DNA of 64,000 nt, taken from sequence record OQ718158.1. One strand, written 5' to 3'. Shown here piece after piece: positions 43,620 through 44,106 of the stretch. The notes beneath the pieces are model-generated. The model was given only the letters and a program-made list of their open reading frames with translations. It was not told where the DNA came from and ran no database searches. Each line of letters starts with the position of its first letter. Positions within the stretch are counted from its first letter, which is position 1. Position numbers and translations under genes: made by a program.

Positions 43620-43784
43620 ATGACACATGAAGAATGGATGAATGACATTAATTTTAGATATTCGGGTATCGGTAGTTGGAGAAAATATCATTGGGAAATC
43701 ATATCAGACCCAGCAGAATACGATAAACTTATGAATGATGAAGTGTATCCGTGGTTCTTTATTGAAATAATGGTACGATTATGA
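43620..43784 (+). CDS. 54-aa MTHEEW microprotein, array unit 1
   Basis: MTHEEWMNDINFRYSGIGSWRKYHWEIISDPAEYDKLMNDEVYPWFFIEIMVRL; AAAGG RBS. Confidence 0.75.
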   Translation: MTHEEWMNDINFRYSGIGSWRKYHWEIISDPAEYDKLMNDEVYPWFFIEIMVRL

Positions 43785-43945
43785 CACATGAAGAATGGAT
43801 GAATGACATTAATTTTAGATATTCGGGTATCGGTAAATGGCTAAAGTATCATTGGGAATTCATTTCAGAGCCACATCTGTATGATAAACTTATCAACGAT
43901 CCAGCATATGAAATGTACTTAATTGAACTACTGGTACGAATATGA
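43781..43945 (+). CDS. 54-aa MTHEEW microprotein, array unit 2
   Basis: MTHEEWMNDINFRYSGIGKWLKYHWEFISEPHLYDKLINDPAYEMYLIELLVRI; ATGA-coupled. Confidence 0.75.
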   Translation: MTHEEWMNDINFRYSGIGKWLKYHWEFISEPHLYDKLINDPAYEMYLIELLVRI

Positions 43946-44106
43946 CACATGAAGAGTGGATGAAACGCCAAAAAATAAAGTGGAATCCTTATTATCTACC
44001 ATTAGATTCTAGAATGTGGGATGTTATACGTGTTAAGTGTATGTACAAAGCATATTTAAGTACTGAACTCGACGAAGAAGTACTGATGCATATCGTGCAC
44101 CGATGA
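43942..44106 (+). CDS. 54-aa MTHEEW microprotein, array unit 3
   Basis: MTHEEWMKRQKIKWNPYYLPLDSRMWDVIRVKCMYKAYLSTELDEEVLMHIVHR; ATGA-coupled. Confidence 0.7.
   Translation: MTHEEWMKRQKIKWNPYYLPLDSRMWDVIRVKCMYKAYLSTELDEEVLMHIVHR

Follow-up and report, generated by a model that had tools for sequence, protein, structure and literature searches.

Tandem microprotein genes of a lineage-restricted superfamily beside tRNA genes in Asteriusvirus jumbo phages

Escherichia phage vB_Ec-M-J (OQ718158.1, 378,573 bp) is an Asteriusvirus jumbo phage. A stretch of 64,000 nucleotides of its genome, referred to here as the window, carries five short open reading frames (ORFs), all of which are hypothetical proteins in the GenBank record. 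On balance we regard the five as paralogues of a lineage-restricted superfamily of soluble proteins, about 55 residues in length, which are coding and old, have been multiplied by tandem duplication, are linked to tRNA genes and are predicted to fold into four helices. The family is already catalogued as two PHROGs without an assigned function; the superfamily and its predicted fold are defined here. A literature search found no description of the family.

The locus and its expression layout

Between positions 41500 and 45000 the window is 90-98% identical to other PBECO4/121Q-like jumbo coliphages. The five genes form two clusters (Table 1). The preliminary description of this DNA had pointed to three 54-aa ORFs joined by ATGA overlaps and placed directly after an odd tRNA, and the sequence and the ORF list agree with it. 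The stop/start overlaps fall at 42121, 43781 and 43942, all on one strand, and unit 1 starts 21-24 nt 3′ of the atypical tRNA. There are 32 ATGA junctions in the isolate genomes. The atypical tRNA gives an Rfam tRNA match over 43517-43595 with 32.6 bits and is not called by ARAGORN. In the ORF at 41939 the head, TFDEWF, follows a three-residue N-terminal extension.

Table 1. Features of the locus, in window positions
Feature	Position	Strand	Remarks
Family member 1	41939-42124	+	61 aa, phrog_31562 type; ATGA overlap with the 42121 ORF
Family member 2	42121-42291	+	56 aa, type D, head MTHKEW
Sigma-70-like promoter	43383-43412	+	TTGGAA, 18 nt, TG-extended TATAAT; upstream of tRNA-Ser
tRNA-Ser(UGA)	43423-43512	+	First gene of the putative transcription unit
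Atypical tRNA, UCU anticodon loop	43517-43598	+	Directly 5′ of unit 1
Shine-Dalgarno-like AAAGG	43608-43612	+	7 nt before the unit 1 ATG; conserved in relatives
Unit 1	43620-43784	+	54 aa, type A; found in 13/13 genomes compared
Junction repeat	43762-43803, second copy 43923-43964	+	Conserved C-terminal VR codons, ATGA and MTHEEWM codons
Unit 2	43781-43945	+	54 aa, type B; missing from 4/13 genomes
Unit 3	43942-44106	+	54 aa, type C
Sigma-70-like promoter	44116-44143	+	TTGACT, 16 nt, TATAAT; 10 nt past the unit 3 stop

GenBank places the start of unit 1 (EcMJ_472) at an internal methionine, window position 43638, and the MTHEEW head is lost as a result. We favour 43620 as the true start because the annotations of orthologues and the conserved AAAGG both point to it.

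Going upstream from the three-gene array, the first promoter-like site is the one that precedes tRNA-Ser. It is conserved in six of seven aligned genomes; in the seventh, JNE01, its place is taken by a different, TTGACT-type promoter. The promoter scan returned fewer sites overall than shuffled sequence, so that single calls are weak and it is the conservation that provides support. Promoter and terminator scans of the interval between the tRNA and unit 1 gave no promoter-like or terminator-like site, and the promoter that follows unit 3 would mark the downstream end of the transcription unit. Units 1 to 3 would share one polycistronic RNA with the two tRNAs, transcribed from the promoter that precedes tRNA-Ser. 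The tRNAs would be processed out and unit 1 translated from its own Shine-Dalgarno site. In units 2 and 3 the Shine-Dalgarno-like sequence is only weak and the start overlaps the preceding stop, an arrangement that fits their translation by termination-reinitiation at the ATGA overlaps. Four RNA-labelled metagenome runs provide contigs over the whole region at low depth, which could be DNA carry-over, and their peaks over the tRNAs derive from unrelated tRNAs. No Asteriusvirus transcriptome was found in a literature search.

Two further elements were observed near the genes. An exact 23-nt direct repeat with a TTGACT -35 box occurs at 44115-44137 and 44536-44558, the copies being 421 bp apart. 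Each copy is part of a sigma-70-like promoter that scores 11/12; the same promoter cassette is thus used twice. Between an ORF that ends at 42514 and a consensus promoter at 42602-42630 there is a GC-rich stretch, 42512-42602, which folds into a closed structure of several stems (MFE -26.5 kcal/mol; z -2.5 relative to shuffles) and is followed by a U-rich run. Rfam has no match to the structure, and both a terminator-like element and a small structured RNA are possible.

Superfamily membership, coding status and distribution

Units 1, 2 and 3 match the phrog_10970 profile with E-values of 6.6e-27, 1.4e-24 and 4.5e-26, and the ORF at 42121 does so with 4.6e-29. The matches span profile positions 1-55/56, and with E-values from 1e-24 to 5e-29 for one and the same profile the likeness of these four ORFs is far beyond chance. 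The ORF at 41939 belongs with a different profile, phrog_31562 (E 5.7e-42, positions 1-59 of 61). It also shares 46% identity (E 7e-16) with the second member, head MTKEEW, of an array on the metagenome contig L015, and an iterated HMM retrieves it with E 3e-17. Aligned with hhalign, the phrog_10970-type and phrog_31562-type sequences give a probability of 93.8% and E 1.8e-7 over 53 columns. The L015 bridge and the profile-profile match identify the TFDEWF ORF as a true member, and these comparisons indicate that the two PHROGs are one superfamily. The kinship of the MTHKEW and TFDEWF ORFs to the three units, which had been proposed on inspection, is thereby upheld by the PHROG profiles, hhalign and the iterated HMM alike.

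Run over all loci, the iterated HMM converges on 145 ORFs, all on the plus strand, among 653 ORFs from both strands. Drift among small AT-rich ORFs is a risk in principle for an iterated HMM; the absence of minus-strand matches and the independent hhalign result argue against this. The tested members share the features by which we define the MTxxEW microprotein superfamily, namely the head motif, a hydrophobic helix at the C-terminus and a size of some 50-64 aa. The motif M-[ST]-x-x-[EDQ]-[WFY] is present in 89 of 111 unique members, whose median length is 56 aa. Their pI ranges from 4.6 to 9.3 and GRAVY is negative, so that they should be soluble, with no uniform nucleic-acid-binding charge. 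Pfam gives no match for any family member or for 10 neighbours, and in PHROGs the neighbours fall only into families of unknown function.

Position 3 is histidine (M-T-H) in 66 of the 111 members, without exception in the copies from Asteriusvirus isolates; K, R or Y is found at this site in other members. A free N-terminus followed by His3 is the ATCUN pattern for Cu/Ni binding. Such a reading of the M-T-H head is purely a lead.

An HMM made from the window copies was run against all ORFs of the window and of 13 related genomes. Each genome carries four to seven copies, co-oriented and in the same 3-kb tRNA-rich region. Pooled dN/dS values within six orthologous types, A to F, are 0.19, 0.29, 0.27, 0.21, 0.37 and 0.27, a check that the preliminary description had called for and that places all six types within 0.19-0.37. 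The codons of the MTHEEW head vary synonymously among copies (ACA/ACG, CAT/CAC, GAA/GAG), hence the head is constrained as protein. Reading frames are intact in the 13 genomes with two exceptions, a broken copy in 121Q and unit 3 in CMSTMSU, where the match is partial (residues 11-54) and an intact unit 3 is lacking. These patterns of substitution indicate that the five ORFs are genuine protein-coding genes under purifying selection.

The broken copy in 121Q is the sixth family copy of that phage (record positions 72113-72256; L003 2122-2265). It is interrupted by an in-frame TGA, lies at a D/E-type gene position and is annotated as two tiny ORFs, gp115 and gp116.

How old is the set? In the maximum-likelihood tree of 13 genomes each of the types A to F forms one group, both in the best tree and in 86-98% of bootstrap trees, and by tblastn unit 3 has a match in all 36 matching phage records, mostly at 94-100% identity. 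The tree topology shows the paralogue types to be older than the sampled Asteriusvirus genomes. Since each type has genus-wide orthologues, detected by tblastn, the array is not a recent one-off duplication and a multi-copy family is present in relatives. The genes had also been described as an expanding cassette, and this does not hold for vB_Ec-M-J. Every type is monophyletic in the 13 genomes sampled, and what distinguishes the genomes is mostly whether an old type is present or absent; the comparison indicates an old and stable five-copy set. Only in uncultured relatives did we see expansion, the largest array having at least 23 copies.

A six-frame search with a 78-sequence profile finds exactly five copies in the whole vB_Ec-M-J genome and none in K64-1, GAP32, CBB or PA5oct. 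Two CBB matches (E 0.008) contain stop codons and were rejected as spurious. Orthologues detected by tblastn, the search suggested in the preliminary description, occur only in 36-37 records of Escherichia/Salmonella jumbo phages (Asteriusvirus). A word-indexed search of 5.8 billion proteins gave only 16 matching clusters, and an exhaustive profile search of 1.84 billion representatives gave 22 matches. One of the latter, P0031, is a eukaryotic repeat protein of 1052 aa and was discarded as spurious. A search of IMG/VR returned phage 121Q alone.

Divergent matches to the family are absent from sequenced isolates and sit on metagenome-assembled contigs, in runs of 15-26 consecutive ORFs of 50-66 aa. 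L014 has 20 members, L015 and L016 have 17 and L017 has 14. L015 is syntenic with the window and its flanking proteins are 69% and 27% identical; on these grounds contigs of this type are taken to be from distant Asteriusvirus relatives. The arrays adjoin tRNA clusters, being directly upstream in L014, L015, L016 and L032 and interspersed in L017. Indeed every array found, in isolates and uncultured relatives, is co-oriented and lies inside or beside a tRNA island. Most junctions in the metagenomic arrays are short gaps, not overlaps. In the collections searched the superfamily does not extend beyond Asteriusvirus and a small number of uncultured relatives.

The largest array seen is on L032, a Logan contig of 78 kb (ERR4503900_124), where 23 HMM-confirmed and two probable members occupy 4.5 kb (6892-11369). 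They are followed immediately by genes for tRNA-Leu, Gly, Ser, Arg and Met and by a gene encoding a T5orf172 domain.

Repeat structure and array growth

The 161-bp period and the junction repeat noted earlier in the three-gene array were both recovered by repeat searches. Tandem Repeats Finder reports a period of 161 with 2.1 copies and 83% matches over 43620-43964, and the repeat search places a 42-nt junction repeat family at 43601, 43762 and 43923. The A/B and B/C junctions have about 33 nt in common. Alignment also agrees with the earlier reading that units 1 and 2 share 55 identical nt and that unit 3 shares the head only. The first 55 nt of units 1 and 2 are identical and 29 of the remaining 105 nt differ, while the sequence that unit 3 has in common with the other two is limited to the first 23 nt or so. 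The encoded proteins of units 1 and 2 are 70% identical, and those of units 1 and 3 are 25% identical.

Between types A and B there are no synonymous differences in the head (0 of 8.7 sites) as opposed to 0.40 in the body, a contrast that is only marginally unusual. Ongoing gene conversion of the A/B head was considered and rejected, the number of head differences being 3.11 within and 3.14 between genomes. A contig from an RNA-labelled metagenome run, X15, matches from 43780 onwards and has unrelated sequence before that point. The break is at the exact unit 1/unit 2 junction, consistent with a strain carrying a different upstream unit.

Of the 20 members in L014, 15 have their closest paralogue right beside them, where two are expected (p<0.0005), and in L015 this is so for six of 17 (p=0.03). 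Arrays have therefore grown by local tandem duplication followed by divergence. The slot that follows the two tRNAs varies accordingly in content. It holds two units, A-C, in PBECO4, UE-S1, A4 and E9.1 and three units, A-B-C, in vB_Ec-M-J, 121Q, G17, JNE01 and others. The Asteriusvirus-like Logan contig ERR10615576_131 (L030, positions 7-481) begins inside B and continues with a divergent type (P0029) and C, which implies a four-unit variant of the slot. Across the two-, three- and four-unit slots unit boundaries are always exact. Such differences in copy number fit unequal recombination at the junction repeat, for which the repeat is a likely substrate; each event across the approximately 33 nt would lengthen or shorten the array by exactly 161 bp. 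Between phages the region is a mosaic; JNE01 combines a near-identical A type with a C type of only 67% identity.

In PBECO4 (L002 1855-1879 and 2373-2397), and likewise in G17, 121Q and E9.1, a segment of 25 nt, cacttaattg[a/t]actggatacataaa, is found ahead of both the D-type and the F-type copy. It corresponds to the 3′ end of an upstream gene encoding 72 aa. Some duplications have therefore taken more than the microprotein ORF.

Predicted fold and possible function

An AlphaFold2 model based on the 78-sequence alignment has a pLDDT of 84.7 and places helices at residues 3-14, 20-29, 31-38 and 44-53. It supersedes a run with 19 sequences, for which the pLDDT was 73.4. Structure prediction, proposed in the preliminary description as a check, thus yields a confident model in which each microprotein is predicted to be a four-helix mini-domain. 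Hydrophobic columns of the alignment are conserved at W6, L7, L10, Y14, W20, W25, I27, I28, Y34, L37 and I38 and, in the C-terminal part, at F47, I48, I50, A51 and V52. Columns 20, 28, 34, 47, 48 and 50 are 100% hydrophobic, and with the exception of column 49 the columns from 46 to 52 are hydrophobic in 72-100% of sequences. Polar columns have 3.2-4.1 bits of entropy. A conserved hydrophobic core with hypervariable surface positions is predicted.

The predicted fold appears new, since it has no match among the solved structures searched. Foldseek found no match in the PDB for the first model. The best Z-score in a VIA-align wide search was 3.9, within noise for helical models, and a sequence-profile search of the PDB gave only noise at E>0.2. 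BFVD yielded only one protein, of 56 aa and 38% identity, which presumably belongs to the family itself, and no usable look-alike came from the ESM Atlas.

The genes had been described as a constant leader joined to variable bodies. The observations behind this stand, the head being highly conserved and the bodies divergent; the idea of a separate leader does not. A constant-leader system would have the same leader on non-homologous bodies, and here the bodies are homologous end to end. A helix capping box consists of an N-cap Ser/Thr and an Glu/Asp/Gln at N3, and a hydrophobic staple joins residues N′ and N4. The head M-T-x-x-E-W fits a capping box (T2 as N-cap, E5 as N3) with a Met/Trp staple and a core tryptophan. 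According to DSSP helix 1 of the model starts at residue 3, consistent with T2 as N-cap. We suggest that the capping box is the simplest account of the apparent leader. With threonine as the second residue Met1 may be cleaved off, in which case the staple residue would be lost.

What might the proteins do? No homology or fold similarity to characterised proteins was found in Pfam, the ESM Atlas, the PDB, BFVD or fold searches. Mass spectrometry of the phAPEC6 virion identified 62 proteins, including one of 4.66 kDa (PMC7247149). In that single study none of the phAPEC6 family members, gp094c-096c and gp099c-101c, is among the 62 (PMC7247149), and the products are therefore probably non-structural. 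We lean, with rather less than even confidence, towards the family being non-virion accessory proteins that are made early from host-type promoters and whose diversified surfaces bind different host or defence targets. The conserved core and hypervariable surface, the lineage-specific amplification and the host-type promoters point to an accessory role of this kind at the phage-host interface.

An anti-defence role, raised in the preliminary description, is possible but unsupported; the neighbours include no Aca-type HTH regulator and have no Pfam domain, and searches of the PDB by sequence and by fold gave no relative. A specific form of it, which we think unlikely, is a repertoire of mini-binders in which the four-helix scaffold has been duplicated in tandem and diversified on its surface, so that every copy has its own host factor or defence protein to neutralise. 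Gain and loss of units at the junction repeat would then give fast turnover of the repertoire, and defences that target tRNA would be the first candidates, given how firmly the arrays are tied to the tRNA island. That the proteins are inhibitors of host defences that target tRNA, anticodon nucleases for example, can also be proposed in its own right. Every array, in isolates and in distant relatives, is inside or directly beside a tRNA cluster, and units 1-3 are apparently co-transcribed with two tRNAs. Against this, there is no homology to any known inhibitor, and in virulent phages generally small accessory ORFs and homing endonucleases accumulate in tRNA islands; the tRNA regions considered here also carry HNH and T5orf172 endonuclease genes. 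The linkage may equally result from genome plasticity and shared early promoters rather than function, and we judge tRNA-linked counter-defence quite unlikely. Just as doubtful is the proposal that the paralogues are subunits of one helical complex, for which coupled translation supplies equal amounts. It has in its favour the ATGA layout at every junction within the two clusters of the window and the general point that paralogues often retain ancestral self-association interfaces. A fixed stoichiometry is a poor fit to slots of two to four units and genomes with five to at least 23 copies, and in the metagenomic arrays the junctions are mostly short gaps.

Two other explanations were considered. 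MTHEEW might be a constant tag for sorting, packaging or degradation of variable small-protein cargo, and the head is indeed the most conserved part of the protein. The homology of the bodies over their full length speaks against a tag, as do the place of the head in the first turn of helix 1 in the model, with W6 among the conserved hydrophobic positions, and the lack of family members in the phAPEC6 virion proteome. We consider a tag very unlikely. Alternatively the frames might not encode functional proteins at all, being chance or decaying frames in a DNA or RNA element that acts at the nucleotide level, as a 161-bp periodic repeat with a conserved junction could suggest. This we regard as highly improbable. 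The dN/dS ratio is well below 1 in all types, the head carries synonymous changes, and the frames are intact in 13 genomes apart from the 121Q copy and CMSTMSU unit 3; even at 25% identity the length, the hydrophobic pattern and a confidently predicted fold are kept. The accessory role at the phage-host interface, with targets that differ from copy to copy, remains the reading that we prefer.

In the jumbo phages of the Rak2/Asteriusvirus group more than 80% of genes are of unknown function. Five anonymous ORFs can now be assigned to one superfamily with a predicted fold, an evolutionary mode and a strict link to tRNA islands. That uncultured relatives carry arrays of 20 or more copies marks the scaffold as strongly favoured for diversification, and such diversification is typical of proteins at the host-parasite interface. 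The proteins are small, soluble and easily synthesised, which suits them to screens for host takeover and anti-defence activity, and they offer a compact natural scaffold with hypervariable surfaces. A mini-binder repertoire, if true, would be a new and expandable counter-defence architecture built on a new fold. Should the function prove mundane, the annotation is still useful, including the corrected start of EcMJ_472.

The catalogued families phrog_10970 and phrog_31562 have direct full-length profile matches to ORFs of vB_Ec-M-J. In PHROGs they are separate, unrelated entries without annotation; the present analysis unites them and adds a predicted fold, a distribution and an array architecture. 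In gene layout the locus resembles the clusters of small early or host-takeover genes of other phages, such as the SPO1 host-takeover module, the ORFs of the T4 hyperplastic region and T7 gp0.4 and gp2. Very small soluble proteins, co-oriented and packed genes, sigma-70 promoters and an accessory, variable character are common to both. There is no sequence or fold similarity to this family, and whereas those clusters consist mostly of unrelated genes, here one paralogous family has been amplified in tandem. Anti-CRISPR and other anti-defence loci are likewise small, fast-diverging and variable, with copy content that differs between close relatives; unlike anti-CRISPR loci, the arrays have no HTH/Aca-like regulator or Pfam domain in their neighbours and no match to a solved structure. 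The tRNA regions of T4-like and T5-like phages, in which small ORFs and homing endonucleases are interspersed, provide a further parallel, in that tRNA genes, small hypothetical ORFs and HNH/T5orf172 genes share one plastic region. The difference is that here a single family dominates the island, in arrays of up to 23 or more.
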